DNA of 64,000 nucleotides. Source: Basidiobolus meristosporus CBS 931.73. Taxonomy: Eukaryota > Fungi > Basidiobolomycota. Positions 4,730 through 12,924 of this stretch are shown here, one piece after another. Within the stretch, counting starts at the first letter, position 1; the number at the start of each line of letters is the position of its first letter. The position numbers and the translations under genes are program-made. The notes beneath the pieces were generated by a model. That model had not been told where the DNA came from. It was given only the letters and a program-made list of their open reading frames with translations, and did no database searches. The stretch is from the NCBI GenBank assembly GCA_002104905.1, contig MCFE01000175.1, positions 1 through 64,000 on the forward strand. Reading direction: 5' to 3'.

Positions 4730-5670
4730 ATGATTCTAATCAAAGCCACTACTCTTGCACTCCTGCTTACCATAACTTCCAACATATGTTTGACTCATGC
4801 TGCTCAAGTTACGGACCAATGTCTTGAGGGTGATAATAACTCTAAGGCAGCGGCAATCAAGATTTACTCTTTCGAAGAAGCCCTTTGGCCAGGCCCAGTT
4901 CGCCTCACTCTGGCCGAGAAAAGTTTAAGAGATGTCGAAGTAATTGAAGTGAACTTGGCTGTTGCGGAGAATCTTTCTCCAGAATATCTCAAGTAGGACA
5001 TGATACGGAATCTATCTGTGCAATGAATCTAACCTTTCGCTCTAGGATCAATCAGCATGGTACTGTGCCTGCTCTGGTGGACACAAATACAGGAATGATT
5101 CTTGACGATTCCACCACCATTACCAAGTTCCTTGATGAAAACTTCCCTGGGACAGAGTTGTATCCCGCCCAAGAGCTGTCTAATATTGATCGCTGGATCA
5201 AGGAAGCCCACAATGTGGATGGAAATCTTTTGGCCATCTCACCGGCGAATGCAGGTGAGCTCAAGCAGAAAAAAGCCTTTGCTGAAAAGTTCTTGGGCGA
5301 TCGGTTAAAGGCTTTAGCGAAATTTATGAAGAAACAAGATATTGCACTTTATCGCGAGAAACAAAAGGAGATGCAGTCGGTCCTGAATGCTTATCAACAT
5401 CCTGAGCAGGCACAGCCGCTGTATGATAGCCACAACAACGAATGGAAAAAAGCAGAAGCGTTTCTGAATCGGCTGGACGCTCAGTTAGCAATTGGCCCAT
5501 ATGTTGTAGGAAAGAAGTATACATTAGCTGATGTTCATACTATTCCGTTGTTGTTACGGTTAAAGTCGATCAAGGGAGATGCAGTGTTGAAGGGGAGACA
5601 GAACCTGCAAAGGTATCTGTACAAGGTAGCATCAAGGGAGAATTTCAAGGCAGTGTATGGCGCACTATGA
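4730..5670 (+). CDS. Glutathione S-transferase (GST_N/GST_C) with an N-terminal signal-peptide-like extension; exons 4730-4992 and 5046-5670
   Basis: A 53-nt GT-AG intron joins PEYLK to INQHGTVPAL. Motifs: VRLTLAEK, ENLSPEYLKINxxGTVPAL, DSTTITKFLD, YTLADVHTIPLL. Hydrophobic N-terminus MILIKATTLALLLTITSNICLTHA. Confidence 0.88.
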
Positions 5671-5914: not shown

Positions 5915-7663
5915 CTAAATTCGACTAGACTTTGCTGGTTTCAATATGCCATTGTACCACTTGACCTTCCCGTCAGGTTGATTGGCTTTGGATTCAGTGG
6001 TGGTGCATATACCTCTATTATCCTGACCTTCCCCAAGGTCGTATGGCGCCAAAAAGACCAAGGCAACTCCAGCAAGAACCAGGGCACAGACACCACATAA
6101 AGACAAGATCTTTTGGGTGTCGATATATGCTGCCTGCACTAGCGCTTTTTGATCTGTACGAAGTGTTTTGAAGTAGGTAATACTGTTAATAGCTTTAGCT
6201 ACATCAACGCTAGGGTCCATGCGCCCGTTAAGTTTGTTCGGCAAAACAGTGTTCCAGATGGTTGTTGAAACGGCCTCCCCGATTGCCCCACCCAAATATG
6301 CGACCATAGAGTACAGCGCAATTGCGATTGCAATATCCACCTGATCAACTGAAGCCTGGACACCTATACCAATACAACTAATGGTGATACCACTACCAAG
6401 CCCGAGAAGGCCTTGCACTGCTGCGATCTCGCCATTGGATGTGTGCGTTCCCCCACGAGTTCTGATCATAAGTCCAACCGATATCAGGTATATAGCCCAC
6501 CCTAGCCAAGCCCACCGACGGTAACGTTTAGATTTTTGCATAGCCCATCCTCCGAGAATGGCACCAATATAGTAGACTACAGAACCAAGCTGTAGCAGCT
6601 GAGCAGTACGGGCGTCGGTATCACGAGTTACCTGAATAAAGGCGTTGAAGAAGAAAAGGGAGACATTTGAAGTGAAATAGAACATTGTTCCAGCTCCCAT
6701 TGCTGCTGAGAAGGTACGGTTTTTGAACAATCTGAAGGGCACGACAGGACAACGTGCCAATTTATGTTCGTAGAGACAAAAAAAACCTAAAACCAGAACG
6801 CCGGATACAAGGGGACCGAGAACACGGCGATCACTCCATCCATAGACTATATTGTAGCTCAAGCCAAGAGGTAGCAGCACCATAATGACTCCTCCGCAGA
6901 GTAGCAAAAGGCCAAAGAGATCGAGTTCAATCGCCATATTCTTTAGGCTTTTGAAAATTGATTGCGGAAGGAATGGATCATCGAGTATATCCAAATTCTC
7001 ACGCGCGCGTTTGTCGACAATGCAGAGACTATAAATAGCTGGAACTGAGCAGACTAAGGCAAGAATGGCTAAGAGGCCATAAACCCAGCGCCACTGATGG
7101 ATTAGTGCCTGCGCAACCACGGGCCCTAGATAGGCGTTTGTCACGCTAGGGATTGCCATGTAGCCGTTGTAAGAACCGCGAAGGTGTAGTGGAATGAAAT
7201 CGGCAATCAGAATAATGGAGATAGTACCATACCCGGCTTGCCCGATGGTGGACAATATCGTACCGCCAAAAATATAATCGAAGTTACGTGCACTGGCACA
7301 TGTGACAAATCCGATTGTGTGGAACGCTATGGATATGACAATAGCATGTACACGGCCAAATGTATCGGCAATCTTGGCAAAGATTGGGCGTAAGCCGGCA
7401 ACTAGCAAATAGGTTACACTTGTAAGCGCACCATACATAGTCATGCTGTTATAGGTACTTAATACGTCCGGCATGATAGTAGCAGTAGCACTCGTATCCA
7501 TGGCCGTAACGAAGTTGATAGCGAAAAGGCTGCCGATGATCAGAAACTGATCAATTTTGCGCCATTCCCCAGCGGAGCCCTTTTTCACACCAGCAAGTTC
7601 TTCGCTCTCCATATGAGCCTTCGTCGTATGTTGCTCAGCACGTAACCCCTCCCCACTGGACAT
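5915..7663 (-). CDS. MFS siderophore-iron transporter (SIT/ARN/MirB-like), intronless
   Basis: 582 aa with many TM helices. Motifs AKIADTFGR, WRWVYG, PVVPFRLFKNRTF, RYRRW and a C-terminal GGAIGEAVSTTIW...AYIDTQK pattern typical of SIT family members. Confidence 0.8.
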   Translation of the reverse strand: MSSGEGLRAEQHTTKAHMESEELAGVKKGSAGEWRKIDQFLIIGSLFAINFVTAMDTSATATIMPDVLSTYNSMTMYGALTSVTYLLVAGLRPIFAKIADTFGRVHAIVISIAFHTIGFVTCASARNFDYIFGGTILSTIGQAGYGTISIILIADFIPLHLRGSYNGYMAIPSVTNAYLGPVVAQALIHQWRWVYGLLAILALVCSVPAIYSLCIVDKRARENLDILDDPFLPQSIFKSLKNMAIELDLFGLLLLCGGVIMVLLPLGLSYNIVYGWSDRRVLGPLVSGVLVLGFFCLYEHKLARCPVVPFRLFKNRTFSAAMGAGTMFYFTSNVSLFFFNAFIQVTRDTDARTAQLLQLGSVVYYIGAILGGWAMQKSKRYRRWAWLGWAIYLISVGLMIRTRGGTHTSNGEIAAVQGLLGLGSGITISCIGIGVQASVDQVDIAIAIALYSMVAYLGGAIGEAVSTTIWNTVLPNKLNGRMDPSVDVAKAINSITYFKTLRTDQKALVQAAYIDTQKILSLCGVCALVLAGVALVFLAPYDLGEGQDNRGICTTTESKANQPDGKVKWYNGILKPAKSSRI

Positions 7664-8066
7664 CGCAGTGATCTACTTTAGATAGCTGACGGAAAGTGGC
7701 TTACGAACAACAAGAGTAGCTTCGGTATATATGTTCACCGATGCTATTCACCAAGAGCTTTCGCCAACGCTCAGAGGAGTAGTGGATTGATTTTCGGTAC
7801 CATACCATTGCTATTTATTCCTACGACTACTCTGAGTGACCTCCTCATTTTATGGCCACATACAGTCCCACATCTGGTTTTGGTGAAAAGTTTTCACACT
7901 GTCATCCCTATTCACATCAACTTTCACCATTTTTGTCTGCCACCATTCGACTCGTAACCAACAACAAATATGGGGGCTTCAGACACACAAGTCCTGGGAA
8001 CCCAGCCACGATATATGAAGTAACTGCAACAACTGTCTTTAATAGCAATATGATTCATGCTGATCC

Positions 8067-8241
8067 ATCAGATAATGTGCACTCAGATGAAATGATTTGA
8101 TTGTAAACGATCTGATAGCCCAGTAAGCTCTTAGTGGTTCAGAGGGATGGCTAGATTTGACCAAGAAATTCCGATATCTCCATGTATGGCAATTCCCATA
8201 TTGTGGTACAAATTATCATTGGCGTGAACTCGTTATCAGAT
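8067..8241. promoter_or_regulatory. Cluster of three SreA/Fep1-type iron-repression GATA sites in a divergent promoter
   Basis: ATCAGATAA at 8067-8075 (+), ATCTGATAG at 8110-8118 (+, one mismatch), TTATCAGAT at 8233-8241 (= ATCTGATAA on -). They sit between the SIT start (7663) and the oxidoreductase start (8328). Confidence 0.7.
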
Positions 8242-8327
8242 TCTTTTACTTGGAACATCCATCACATATTAAATCTTCCCAAACCTCCAACCATTCCTTA
8301 CATTCATTCGCACCTATCTGTTCTACT

Positions 8328-9611
8328 ATGGGTGCTCTACGTCCATTGCTTAGCCTCAAGCCGGTTCACATCCTCATCGCCGGTGGTAACTACGGTGGTC
8401 TCAATGCTATGAGATATCTTTATTCGCATCTTATTGCACCTCATGGTTATGCTGGCCAAGAACAGGCACCTCCGAATCCCAATGTGCGCATCACCTTGGT
8501 TGACAGACGCGATGGATTTATACACTACGTGGGAATGACCCGAGCGCTGACCGAGCCTGATTTTGGAGAGAAGCTATGGTCATGCTATAAGGATATCCCT
8601 TGGATGTCTCACTCTTCAATCACAATTCGCCAAGCAATTATCGAAGAGGTGTGCGCAAACCATGTAAAACTGGCCAACTGCAATGAAGTAATTGATTTTG
8701 ATTACCTTATATTGGCGCTTGGCCAAAGCCGTGGAGGTCCGATTGGAGTTGGCGCGTCTACCAAAAACGATTATGTCAAGGATCTGAACAAACATCATAA
8801 GGATATCACTAGTGCAAAGTCAATTGTTGTTGTTGGTGGTGGTGCAGTTGGTATCGAGATGGCATCAGACATTAAGTGCGATTTCCCTGAGAAGGATGTC
8901 ACCCTCATTCACTCTCGACCACTCCCAATCCCTGGCCCATTCAAAGATGAATTTCGCCAAGAAACGATACGAATTTTAAAGGAAGATATCGGGGTAAACG
9001 TGATTTTAGGTGAGCGTGTTGTAAACGATCACTCAGAAAACGCAGTTACCGAGCCGGCTCCAAAACTCGCTACTCTACTGCCAGAGTTGATCTCAACGGT
9101 CAAGAAGAATGTTGAGCTAACAACTACCAGCCAGCGTAAGATTGCCGCCGACTGGGTAATCAATTGTCTAGGCACAGCGAGTAAAGCTTCCATCATCAAG
9201 CTTCCGTCATCAACCGACAACCCAATTTTCTCGCCAGCGGGCATCCGCATCAGCAAAACAATGCAGATCAACGATCCGAAATATCAGCACATCTTTGCAG
9301 TAGGGGATATATGCGACAGCAATATTATGAAGCTTGCCGGGATTGCTATGTATGGTGGTTGCATGGCAGCCAAGAATCTCAGCGCACTGATCACTTCAGC
9401 ACAAGGCGAGAGCCCTGAACTCGAAAAATTCCCTGATTTTCCCAGCAAGCTTCTTCTGCTCATGGGCAAAAATCATTTCATCTTTCAGCTTGGGGATGAA
9501 GTCTGGGAACGTGAAAAGACTCGAGAATTCGTTCATGAAGACATGGGGCTGGAGCTTTGCATGAATGCCCTAGCTATCCGAGACTTCCCGAAGCCTGAGA
9601 CCACCTTGTAA
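8328..9611 (+). CDS. AIF/AMID/FSP1-like FAD-dependent pyridine nucleotide oxidoreductase (Pyr_redox_2)
   Basis: ILIAGGNYGG FAD motif, FDYLILALG, IVVVGGGAVGIEMASDIK NAD motif, VTLIHSR, IFAVGDI. First ATG at 8328; the ORF track starts upstream at a non-ATG codon. Confidence 0.9.
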   Translation: MGALRPLLSLKPVHILIAGGNYGGLNAMRYLYSHLIAPHGYAGQEQAPPNPNVRITLVDRRDGFIHYVGMTRALTEPDFGEKLWSCYKDIPWMSHSSITIRQAIIEEVCANHVKLANCNEVIDFDYLILALGQSRGGPIGVGASTKNDYVKDLNKHHKDITSAKSIVVVGGGAVGIEMASDIKCDFPEKDVTLIHSRPLPIPGPFKDEFRQETIRILKEDIGVNVILGERVVNDHSENAVTEPAPKLATLLPELISTVKKNVELTTTSQRKIAADWVINCLGTASKASIIKLPSSTDNPIFSPAGIRISKTMQINDPKYQHIFAVGDICDSNIMKLAGIAMYGGCMAAKNLSALITSAQGESPELEKFPDFPSKLLLLMGKNHFIFQLGDEVWEREKTREFVHEDMGLELCMNALAIRDFPKPETTL

Positions 9612-11324
9612 TGGTATGCTTGCAATGGATCAAAGCGCAGGTCTCTGCTCTTGATTTTTCCAACCACATCAATCTCACACCGTTACTGCCATGCTAAATG
9701 CTAGTGGAAGTATCGTTGTTTCTACGAGTGTGTTCTATTTTGATCCATTAGCATTCAGTCATTTCATTAAGTGACATTCTAAGCACCATCATCCTTCCTG
9801 TTGGTAACGAGAGTGAAAATGTTTAGTTTTCTTATCACGCAGAACACTGCCTTTCTCCTGATTCTCAAACTATCTTTAATAAAGGTTGCTTTAGACTTCA
9901 AGGAGATAATGTTGCTCAAGCCTTCATGTTTCTCATATTACTCCAACATTCAGAAGTTCAGCAAAAACCACTTGGAAGTTTTCCAGGACAAGTTATCTCC
10001 CAATATTGTAGGTGATGTAGAAGGGCGGTCCTGCGCAAGTTTAAGTGTATTGTAATCCGCATGGATTTGTATAGTATATCATCAATTCAGTAGATATATT
10101 TGTACGTGTACGCTACATAACGTTTTATAACTAATACAGGCTCGTATCCACTTATTGGCAGCACCATTTTACCGCGCGAAATCCATTCATTCAAACTACT
10201 TATTGCTACAAAGACCTTTACACTTCAAGCATGTATTAGGTAAACTAGTTAACCTTCATGCCCAGATCTCTTGTTGTTTGGATACTAAGACAAGATCATC
10301 CCTCGCACATGCGGGATGTGCTTTGGATTAAACCAGATTTCAAATGGGGTAATTAGAGTCAGTGATACATATCAATCCCAAGTATTTACGATGTTTGCAC
10401 CATATGAGATGGAGTTGGGAACACGTGGTGGGATTATTCCATATCTGATCCTTGCAGAAGGAAGACTGTCCATTCCACATATCTGATTGGTAGTGCAGCC
10501 GATTTCGAACAATGTAGCAACAATAGTCTGATATATTGGTCACAGGCTAATCACGATGGGTGATTGTCAAATGTTGTCATATTACTGTATAAGTCGGATT
10601 TGAATGATTTGCATTTTGATGTCATCCTTAGATTTTCTTTGAAGTGCAATGGTTTTTGTTACTGGGCATATTTACAATATACCACTGTACCGATAACTAT
10701 ACACACTTCTATACTTTCTTCACCAGGCAACTATAATGCTCATATATTCCTGACTGGCCTAAGTGGTCTAAATATTACAAGTAACCACTAACCAAGAATT
10801 TGGGTTGGGAGTAGTAAAGACCAGAAGCTAGAATATAGATGAGAGTTGAAACAAATATATAGGTGTTAATATAAGAACTACATCAACAACGCCCCTATGT
10901 AAAAAAACTCAAAGGATCAGTAGAATGCCAGCATATTACCAGCAGAAATCATATTTTCTTTCAAGTTGAAACTTACAATGTCAGAAGCTCTCGCTTTTTG
11001 AGTACAAATAGACACGTAACCTGAAAGAGGATGTACCTATGTAATACTCATACCAGATATGGCAACAGTCAGCCTACTACTTCCTGTGGCATTTGTGCTT
11101 GATAAACTAACTGCAAATACTGGTGTACCACTGGCAGAACACCGTATAGTATTCAGGTTGGATTTTTTCTGCACGGTGCACTAGCCAAATTAATTAGCTT
11201 AGTTGGCTTTAATCCTAACATTTAGATAAACCAGCCTTCTGTATGAGCATATATCTTATAGCATTGCTTTATGAGTATATATAGAACTACTCTGCTATGC
11301 AAAGTAGCTCCATATTACTTTAAG

Positions 11325-11570
11325 AATTTGAGCAATAGAGACCATGTAGATTATGTGGTTTTCACTCAATGCTTTATTGAATGTGAAAGTAGTGTTTATA
11401 CCTTTACTTGTTCTTGTCAAAACAAGCACATAAAGTATGCTTAGAAGGGCTCCAAGAGCATGTGTACAAGGCTTGGACAACTTTAGACAAGTTACTCAGT
11501 TCTTGTCTCCTGAGTACCTGATATTTTGGTAAAATATTTCAAGTCCTAACCAAGAACTTGGGCAAGGTAG
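11325..11570 (-). mobile_element. Degenerate copia LTR remnant
   Basis: Similar to the 349-bp LTR: tatgtggttttcact, gtagtgtttatac, gagtacctgatattttggtaaaatatt. Confidence 0.6.
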
Positions 11571-12924
11571 TTTAAGACTCATAATCTATGAGCTAAACAA
11601 CAAAGTTAGTGAAATACTGTGGCGTAATAAAAGACGTGCAATATAAATGAGCTTGCTTCAATGCAATTGCACCTTGAGTACCACTATATCCAGCTCAATT
11701 TATAAGTATTGTAGCATATGTAGGCACATATAAGGCTCAAGAAGTATGCAATACTGACTTTTAATCTATTCAGACTATTTATGTACAGCTGATGAAGAAC
11801 AGGAGTGGGGGGCTCAAGCTCATTACAAGCCATTTGTGATACTCTCTATTCTGCCTATAATGTCAGGTACCCTGAAAAATACTTGGTAGTAAACAGTGTG
11901 TTCTGTGTAAGCAGTTGTTTTCAATTCAAAGATCTTATGGGTACTTCATCTGATATGTACAAGCAACTTGGTGCTAAACTTATTATTTGAAAGGTCAAAA
12001 TCTTAAAGCAGTCAAGCCTTTTAGCTGCTTAATCAGTAATGAGTAATTTATTACTTCGCTATGGATCACTGCATAGACAATTTCTAACTTAGTGGCGCTT
12101 AGTGGCGAGTAACTTGATGCACAGATGGATAAGGATATAATTGATGCTGTCAGATGGTCGAGCTCTGGCTCCTTGAAAATGAACACTAATACTGATTAGT
12201 ATGCTTCCCAAGTATTTTGGGATCTTCCTCGAGCATTCTAAACAGAAATTTTTAAGGTCACCCATATATGAATACTATATGTTGGGTCAATAAATCCGCA
12301 ATTAGTAGTCAACATTTTGTTCCAAATACTTAAAAAGACCTCCAGATCCCAACTGCCACTATCAGCAGGCCCTACGCTGAGGACATTAGTGTTGTGAGTT
12401 TCGTATTTACATTAACTTGGTGATCTATCCAACGCAGAATACAACTATCATCCTGATAATCACCACACCAATCAGCAAGCATTATCCAAATCTTAGTAGG
12501 AAATTCTAATGAATTAGTGAAGTCATAGATTCATAGCTAATATACTAAAAAGCCCCAATTCTATTATCAACAGTATTGTGATCGGAACTTCCATGCAATT
12601 CGACGTATTTTGTAACTCTTCACAAGTAATATAGATGGGTATGCGCTAATATTTCATATAAAATAAATCGCAATAGATCACTACCAAATATCCGTCCACC
12701 AGATCCGAAGTGACCAATAGATATACGCATATGGGCTGCGGATAACGAATATATTTGGGAGAAAGTCCACTCCACCGAATTAAACCCAAGCCAATTGTTC
12801 AATGCGGGAAGCTGACCTTGACGCCTTCAAGTGCAACATAAATACATATACTTCGTGAACTATGTCCGGTTAAGAAAATTTATCAACCAATCGAATTACT
12901 AGCTGTGGAGTGTTAATTGTCAAA

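Follow-up and report, generated by a model that had tools for sequence, protein, structure and literature searches.

We describe a pair of divergently transcribed genes in Basidiobolus meristosporus CBS 931.73 (contig MCFE01000175.1, positions 1-64000; this 64-kb stretch is referred to below as the window), which encode a transporter of the major facilitator superfamily (MFS) and a flavoprotein reductase, and which probably form a two-gene iron-starvation module governed by GATA sites of the SreA/Fep1/Sre1 type. The flavoprotein falls into one clade with OXR1, Afu1g17180 and CopD of Ascomycota. The link of that family to SreA-controlled siderophore clusters is already published; what is new here is the phylum in which the OXR1-family gene is found and the transporter that accompanies it.

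The MFS gene (5915-7663, minus strand) is an uninterrupted, intronless open reading frame (ORF) of 582 amino acids (aa), and the flavoprotein gene (8328-9611, plus strand) is an intronless ORF of 427 aa that starts at the ATG at position 8328. They are separated by a common divergent promoter of 664 bp (7664-8327). A check of the ORFs bore out all coordinates of this arrangement as given in an earlier note on the locus, and both gene identities proposed there are confirmed at the superfamily level by Pfam matches to MFS_1 (E 1.5e-28) and Pyr_redox_2 (E 4.7e-23). A search of NCBIfam yielded only weak bacterial matches below the threshold. The public B. meristosporus models are shorter, with 439 aa for the MFS protein (6230-7546) and 311 aa for the reductase (8604-9611). 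The full ORFs of the window align end to end with their orthologues (559 and 445 aa in B. ranarum), and the public models of both genes are evidently truncated.

GATA-type sites in the shared promoter

The exact form of the extended motif, ATCWGATAA, occurs twice in the whole window, and both occurrences lie inside the 664-bp promoter, as the putative GATA-repressor sites ATCAGATAA (8067-8075, plus strand) and ATCTGATAA (8233-8241, minus strand). They are accompanied by a putative GATA-type site with one mismatch, ATCTGATAG (8110-8118, plus strand). All three fit into 175 bp, at distances of 87-261 bp from the reductase ATG, the exact site on the minus strand being the proximal one at 87 bp. 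Every number that had previously been given for them proved correct, and the uniform-base estimate of one exact site per 65 kb that went with these numbers is close to our composition-aware expectation of 1.8 per 64 kb. As the two observed sites match this chance expectation, the site count in the window is unremarkable, and the 30 one-mismatch sites of the window, against 44 expected, show no enrichment of that class either. The remarkable feature of the window is the clustering of the sites, not their number: according to an analytic first-order Markov estimate, a 64-kb stretch would hold three ATCWGATAR sites inside some 200-bp interval with a probability of ~2e-4, and a given 664 bp would hold such a group with a probability of ~7e-6.

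We aligned the promoter with the promoters of both reductase paralogs of B. ranarum. The longest invariant runs in this three-way alignment, of 10 bp each, are ATCTGATAGC and TTATCAGATT, which contain the one-mismatch site and the proximal exact site, respectively. The third-longest is ATTGG, i.e. a conserved CCAAT box on the minus strand (8218-8222), 11 bp upstream of the proximal GATA site, which could represent a site of the type bound by the CCAAT-binding complex (CBC) and HapX. Among 20,000 shuffles, an invariant run of at least 10 columns appeared in 0.24%, and two such runs in none. The other exact site, ATCAGATAA, is part of a block (TCCATCAGATAAT) kept in one of the B. ranarum loci (L003), and in this species sites are retained upstream of both reductase paralogs. 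Sites are also present in the orthologous promoters from Martensiomyces, Coemansia and Calcarisporiella.

The same pattern emerges from a count over 11 genes of the reductase clade (three from Basidiobolus, four from Kickxellales, and one each from Calcarisporiella, Histoplasma, Penicillium vulpinum and A. fumigatus); the locus L001, which is the window's own DNA (offset 2603), was excluded as independent evidence. In ten of the 11 genes the 700 bp that precede the start codon contain at least one ATCWGATAR, the exception being the gene from Linderina. The 700-bp upstream regions contain 23 sites in 7.7 kb (3.0 per kb), compared with 19 sites in the 194 kb that make up the remainder of the same loci (0.10 per kb), i.e. 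the upstream density is about 30 times that found elsewhere, and the sites outside these regions are mostly located upstream of other siderophore genes. No ATCWGATAR was found in the Mortierella outgroup locus.

These results make the promoter a well supported predicted target of a repressor of the SreA/Fep1 type, and we infer that the genes would be repressed by iron in Basidiobolus itself. Literature reports of SreA homologues exist for Mucor (PMC7011435), with none for Basidiobolus. The proposal of an iron-repressed pair had been tied in the earlier note to the conservation of the motifs and of the gene pairing in relatives; both are kept, so that the proposal is not refuted on this count.

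Two further observations concern the distribution of the motif. In P. vulpinum the genes for an oligopeptide transporter, a sidI-like ligase and the OXR1 homologue stand in a row (L008:2657-9780), each with ATCWGATAA upstream; to judge by these motifs, the row is an iron-regulated cluster of small size, with an oligopeptide transporter among its members. In the window, the flavoprotein gene is followed by 3.3 kb of AT-rich DNA with no long ORF (9612-12924, GC content ~0.37), in which we found near-sites, namely two copies of ATCAGATAT (at 10441 and 10479) and an overlapping pair (11946-11956).

The flavoprotein and its transporter partner

The best sequence match of the reductase in the PDB is FSP1 (E 3.8e-26). 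Its AlphaFold2 model has a predicted local distance difference test score (pLDDT) of 94, and Foldseek retrieved for it FSP1 as the top match (TM-score 0.88 by target length), followed by type-II NADH dehydrogenases (NDH-2) and AIF. The motifs for NAD(P)H (GGGAVGxE) and for flavin adenine dinucleotide (FAD; GD) are both intact (E177 and G326-D327, respectively). There is no predicted transmembrane (TM) segment in the protein and, by inspection, no presequence, and it has the appearance of an NAD(P)H/FAD enzyme that is soluble and cytosolic. The alignment of the reductases lacks a conserved or redox-active cysteine pair, and we therefore rejected the disulfide reductase chemistry proposed for CopD (PMC12278577).

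We calculated a tree of 48 proteins with FSP1 sequences (support 100) as the outgroup. The reductase is found in one clade (27 rows, support of 97 in the Shimodaira-Hasegawa-like approximate likelihood ratio test) with the Ascomycota group that contains Histoplasma OXR1. This clade comprises sequences from Basidiobolus, Kickxellales, Calcarisporiella and Neoconidiobolus in addition to the Ascomycota group, and is separate from animal FSP1 and from the oomycete, Mortierella and "AMID-like" sequences. It is characterized by a variant of the first dinucleotide motif, GG[N/S]Y[G/A/S]G (vs GGGFGG in FSP1), and by an insertion before strand beta-2. The N-termini read MGALRP in the window, MVAL or MVAV in B. 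ranarum, and MA or MS in Kickxellales; as the N-terminal glycine is not kept among the orthologues, N-myristoylation in the manner of FSP1 is unlikely, and we discarded it as a feature of the reductase. The description of the protein in the earlier note as "FSP1/AIF-like" thus holds for the fold only, since the reductase, tested for placement in the FSP1 clade, falls outside it and lacks a conserved myristoylation glycine; the label "FSP1-like" should be replaced by "OXR1/Afu1g17180/CopD family".

This family is widespread in Pezizomycotina (518 matches at E <=1e-30, some of which are named "Oxidoreductase OXR1"). The gene for the Histoplasma member (P0067) follows a ubiquitin hydrolase gene at a distance of 6 kb and adjoins genes for an ABC transporter and a nonribosomal peptide synthetase (NRPS); we identify it as OXR1, because this genomic context fits the published OXR1 layout. 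OXR1 is induced by iron starvation, as determined by microarray and quantitative reverse-transcription PCR, and its promoter carries the motif (G/A)ATC(T/A)GATAA (PMC2275787). The A. fumigatus member (P0231) adjoins genes for a sidI-like ligase and a sidC-like NRPS, and on account of this context we identify it as Afu1g17180, which belongs to SRGC2, a cluster of the SreA regulon; in A. nidulans the orthologue An0403 and the ABC transporter gene An0404 make up a cluster of two genes (PMC2610380). The coprogen cluster of P. roqueforti contains copD, which encodes a protein of 416 aa with the same annotation, its function being given as unknown (PMC12278577).

The assignment of the MFS protein as related to the siderophore iron transporters (SITs) is supported by sequence comparisons, which place it near a MirC-like branch. 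Its best named HMMER matches outside its own clade are annotated MirC (26% identity, E 6e-48), while bacterial DHA2 proteins reach ~1e-21, and in the ESM Atlas the named clusters closest to the MFS protein are those of siderophore iron transporters. The AlphaFold2 model (pLDDT 85) shows ~14 long helices, and its closest solved folds are 14-TM pumps of the DHA2 family (EfpA, QacA, EmrB and a homologue of Rv1410). Identity to the orthologues amounts to 78% in B. ranarum, 53-57% in Kickxellales and ~40% in Calcarisporiella, and an exhaustive search of a library of 1.84 billion proteins revealed 145 relatives at E <=1e-30. In the MFS tree, in which the named SITs are automatically labelled MirC proteins only, Basidiobolus, Kickxellales and Calcarisporiella form a clade (support 98) that is sister (support 100) to a pan-fungal clade (support 99), and the fungal proteins are split from DHA2 with a support of 99-100. 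The pan-fungal clade roughly follows the order of the species tree and includes the MirC-labelled proteins. As it holds no Zoopagomycota, the MFS protein of the window may be the Zoopagomycota counterpart of this orthogroup. The view of the protein as a "siderophore importer" is therefore retained as far as its relationship to SITs is concerned, but not for import as such, since the nearest named relatives are annotated as MirC, which in A. fumigatus is intracellular and has no known substrate (PMC11380514).

The pairing of the two genes is conserved. B. ranarum possesses one divergent MFS/reductase pair (L003) and a second reductase paralog (L002) with a divergent, MFS-like remnant of 165 residues upstream, which suggests that the pair was duplicated as a unit; this stretch (L002:789-1160, minus strand) is 46% identical to residues 38-202 of the MFS protein only, and may be either a remnant or a copy that has strongly diverged. 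The same divergent pair is present in Martensiomyces, Coemansia sp. D115 and Linderina, and at least seven further Kickxellales assemblies have consecutive locus tags for the two genes. In Calcarisporiella the genes are adjacent but convergent, and the transporter belongs to the same MFS clade. None of the loci of Basidiobolus, Kickxellales or Calcarisporiella has a siderophore biosynthesis gene beside the pair. The reductase gene thus has a transporter gene as its neighbour in every lineage, either an MFS gene, as here, or an ABC transporter gene, as in Histoplasma, P. roqueforti and A. nidulans. The close relatives of both genes are all fungal, and we therefore rejected a bacterial origin of the pair.

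As to other neighbours, a 5'-nucleotidase gene (Metallophos/5_nucleotid_C) is always located 3' of the reductase gene in Kickxellales (L004:7190-9064, L005:6841-9294, L006:3653-5869), and this three-gene synteny is absent in Basidiobolus. In Coemansia spiralis a gene for a Pyr_redox_2 protein of 768 aa (L011:799-3105), ~26% identical to the reductase of the window, is found two genes upstream of a reductase paralog from a second Kickxellales clade. A glutathione S-transferase (GST) gene adjoins the MFS gene in the window (4730-5670), and another one adjoins the OXR1 homologue in P. vulpinum (L008:12239-12958). As there is no GST neighbour in Kickxellales, the adjacency is probably due to chance, and we rejected a glutathione link via the neighbouring GST.

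Proposed function and competing explanations

The following model would account for the module. When iron is sufficient, a repressor of the SreA type would bind the three sites and silence at least the reductase gene and probably the MFS gene as well; under iron scarcity both would be expressed. The MFS protein would then move an iron chelate, i.e. a siderophore, across a membrane (we infer both the substrate and the direction), and the flavoprotein would take electrons from NAD(P)H and deliver them via its FAD to the partner's ferric siderophore, with Fe(II) and the free siderophore ligand as the products. That the flavoprotein is a ferri-siderophore reductase for the chelate of its partner transporter is the role that we favour, if with considerable reserve. 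It is favoured because a transporter partner is present in every lineage, because in Zoopagomycota the pair has no biosynthetic neighbours, because the protein looks soluble and cytosolic and appears to use NAD(P)H and FAD, and because, according to a 2023 review, a reductive route by which fungi free iron from siderophores is still to be identified (PMC10500206). A bolder and somewhat more doubtful generalization would be that the OXR1-family flavoproteins are the missing cytosolic ferri-siderophore reductases of fungi, that the family serves the utilisation of siderophore iron and not siderophore biosynthesis, and that it had entered the iron-repressor regulon before the split between Dikarya and the zygomycete lineages. 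This generalization would build on the conserved transporter-reductase pairing of Zoopagomycota and Calcarisporiella and on the presence of SreA-type sites in three phyla.

Several points weigh against this model. On the side of the transporter, the closest solved folds, as judged from the predicted structure, are exporters, the nearest named relatives by sequence are annotated as MirC, which is located inside the cell in A. fumigatus, and the 20 closest representatives that we looked up (from chytrids, Mucoromycota, Basidiomycota and Ascomycota) bear generic names only. Moreover, with 404-578 bp between the three sites and the MFS ATG, control of the MFS gene is less certain than that of the reductase gene. 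On the side of the reductase, the closest solved folds and characterised relatives are quinone reductases (FSP1 and NDH-2), and we know of no member of the clade for which ferric-chelate reductase activity is documented. Finally, the shared promoter of Linderina is devoid of the site, and the second clade of reductase paralogs in Kickxellales has no MFS neighbour.

In the alternative that survives best, iron starvation induces the flavoprotein as an iron-free NAD(P)H:quinone oxidoreductase of the FSP1/NDH-2 type, and its adjacency to the transporter reflects promoter sharing only. Such an enzyme could either spare iron by replacing the Fe-S-rich NADH dehydrogenase or keep membrane quinones in the reduced state and thereby limit lipid peroxidation when the import of iron rises. 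The ranking of FSP1, followed by NDH-2, among the sequence and structure matches is in line with this explanation, as are the listing of Afu1g17180 as an "alternative NADH dehydrogenase" in the table of a review (PMC12719309) and the presence of a GATA site upstream of the second Kickxellales paralog in spite of its missing transporter neighbour. It is at variance, however, with the position of the reductase outside the FSP1 clade, with the poor conservation of the myristoylation glycine and the absence of any TM segment or other obvious membrane anchor, and with the persistence of the transporter adjacency in Basidiobolus, Kickxellales and Calcarisporiella and, with ABC transporters, in Ascomycota. 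Because the pair is convergent in Calcarisporiella, the adjacency exceeds what promoter sharing requires. We regard the explanation as rather unlikely; if it were true and the enzyme were a quinone reductase only, it would be an ordinary member of the regulon.

Less likely still is that the pair serves the production or recycling of siderophores, with the MFS protein exporting the desferri-siderophore and the flavoprotein tailoring the siderophore or stripping it of iron before re-export. This would agree with the location of the Ascomycota members inside biosynthetic clusters, beside ABC transporters that are presumed exporters (Histoplasma SID, A. fumigatus sidI/sidC and P. roqueforti cop), and with the efflux pumps found as the closest solved folds of the MFS protein. 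On the other hand, no biosynthetic gene adjoins the pair in Basidiobolus, Kickxellales or Calcarisporiella. SidI, SidH and SidF carry peroxisomal targeting signals, while none was seen at those C-termini that were read by eye in the reductase alignment; and to our knowledge the hydroxamate and rhizoferrin routes need no reductive step, which we also count against this explanation.

The idea that the GATA cluster does not act as an iron switch, but arose by chance or serves a different GATA factor, e.g. a nitrogen regulator of the AreA type, can draw on the number of exact sites in the window, which is at the chance level, and on the fact that HGATAR can be bound by any GATA factor, but it is very improbable in view of the tight clustering, of the extended palindromic form ATCWGATAA that is specific to SreA/Sre1 (PMC2610380, PMC2275787), of the rank of the sites as the best-conserved blocks of the promoter, and of their recurrence upstream of clade members in three phyla, two of these members having experimentally demonstrated iron regulation.

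Comparison with known systems

The locus adds to the comparative case for one uncharacterised flavoprotein family as a constant and deeply conserved member of the iron-repressor regulon, a family already known to be regulated by iron in two human pathogens, Histoplasma and A. fumigatus. Membership in the regulon together with transporter adjacency therefore singles out Afu1g17180/OXR1/CopD as a candidate for the fungal ferri-siderophore reductase. The locus also extends the predicted iron control of the ATCWGATAA type to Zoopagomycota, in which iron regulation has hardly been studied.

The Ascomycota proteins OXR1, Afu1g17180 and CopD share with the reductase of the window the clade, the variant of the dinucleotide motif, the beta-2 insertion, the upstream ATCWGATAA and the presence of a transporter gene nearby. 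They are only ~28-30% identical to it, and their genes are located inside NRPS siderophore clusters beside ABC transporters, whereas the gene of the window, from a zygomycete lineage, is part of a stand-alone divergent pair with an MFS gene and has no biosynthetic neighbour. Mammalian FSP1/AIFM2, an NAD(P)H:CoQ oxidoreductase that suppresses ferroptosis, is the best solved match and resembles the reductase in having two dinucleotide-binding domains and no redox-active disulfide. The reductase of the window shares 25-29% identity with it and contains two insertions, one of ~20 residues that follows helix 1 and one of variable length that follows GERV, and we know of no link between FSP1 and siderophore genes.

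The transporter resembles the MirC branch of the SIT/ARN family as a fungal-only, 14-helix MFS protein of ~580 aa, but it shows only 26% identity to any named SIT, and some SITs transport heme or glutathione instead of siderophores (PMC10500206). In other fungi SITs are under the control of SreA/Fep1 (PMC2610380). Promoters regulated by Fep1, SreA, Urbs1 and Sre1 (S. pombe fio1-fip1 and str1, U. maydis sid1, Histoplasma SID) contain multiple copies of ATCWGATAA, and some of them are bidirectional and serve two iron-uptake genes (PMC2610380, PMC2275787). The promoter of the window is likewise bidirectional with multiple copies of the extended site; binding in vivo or in vitro is documented for those promoters and predicted for this one.

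In bacteria, ferric-siderophore reductases tied to importers include FhuF, the SIP family of ViuB/YqjH, and the SIP domain of mycobacterial IrtAB. The 2023 review (PMC10500206) refers to bacterial ferric reductases in general terms. The folds of FhuF and the SIP proteins (FAD_binding_9/SIP, or 2Fe-2S in FhuF) are unrelated to the Pyr_redox_2 fold of the reductase of the window. The logic proposed for the Basidiobolus pair would nevertheless be analogous to theirs, i.e. a flavin-dependent cytosolic enzyme that is co-regulated or fused with a siderophore transporter and releases Fe(II).

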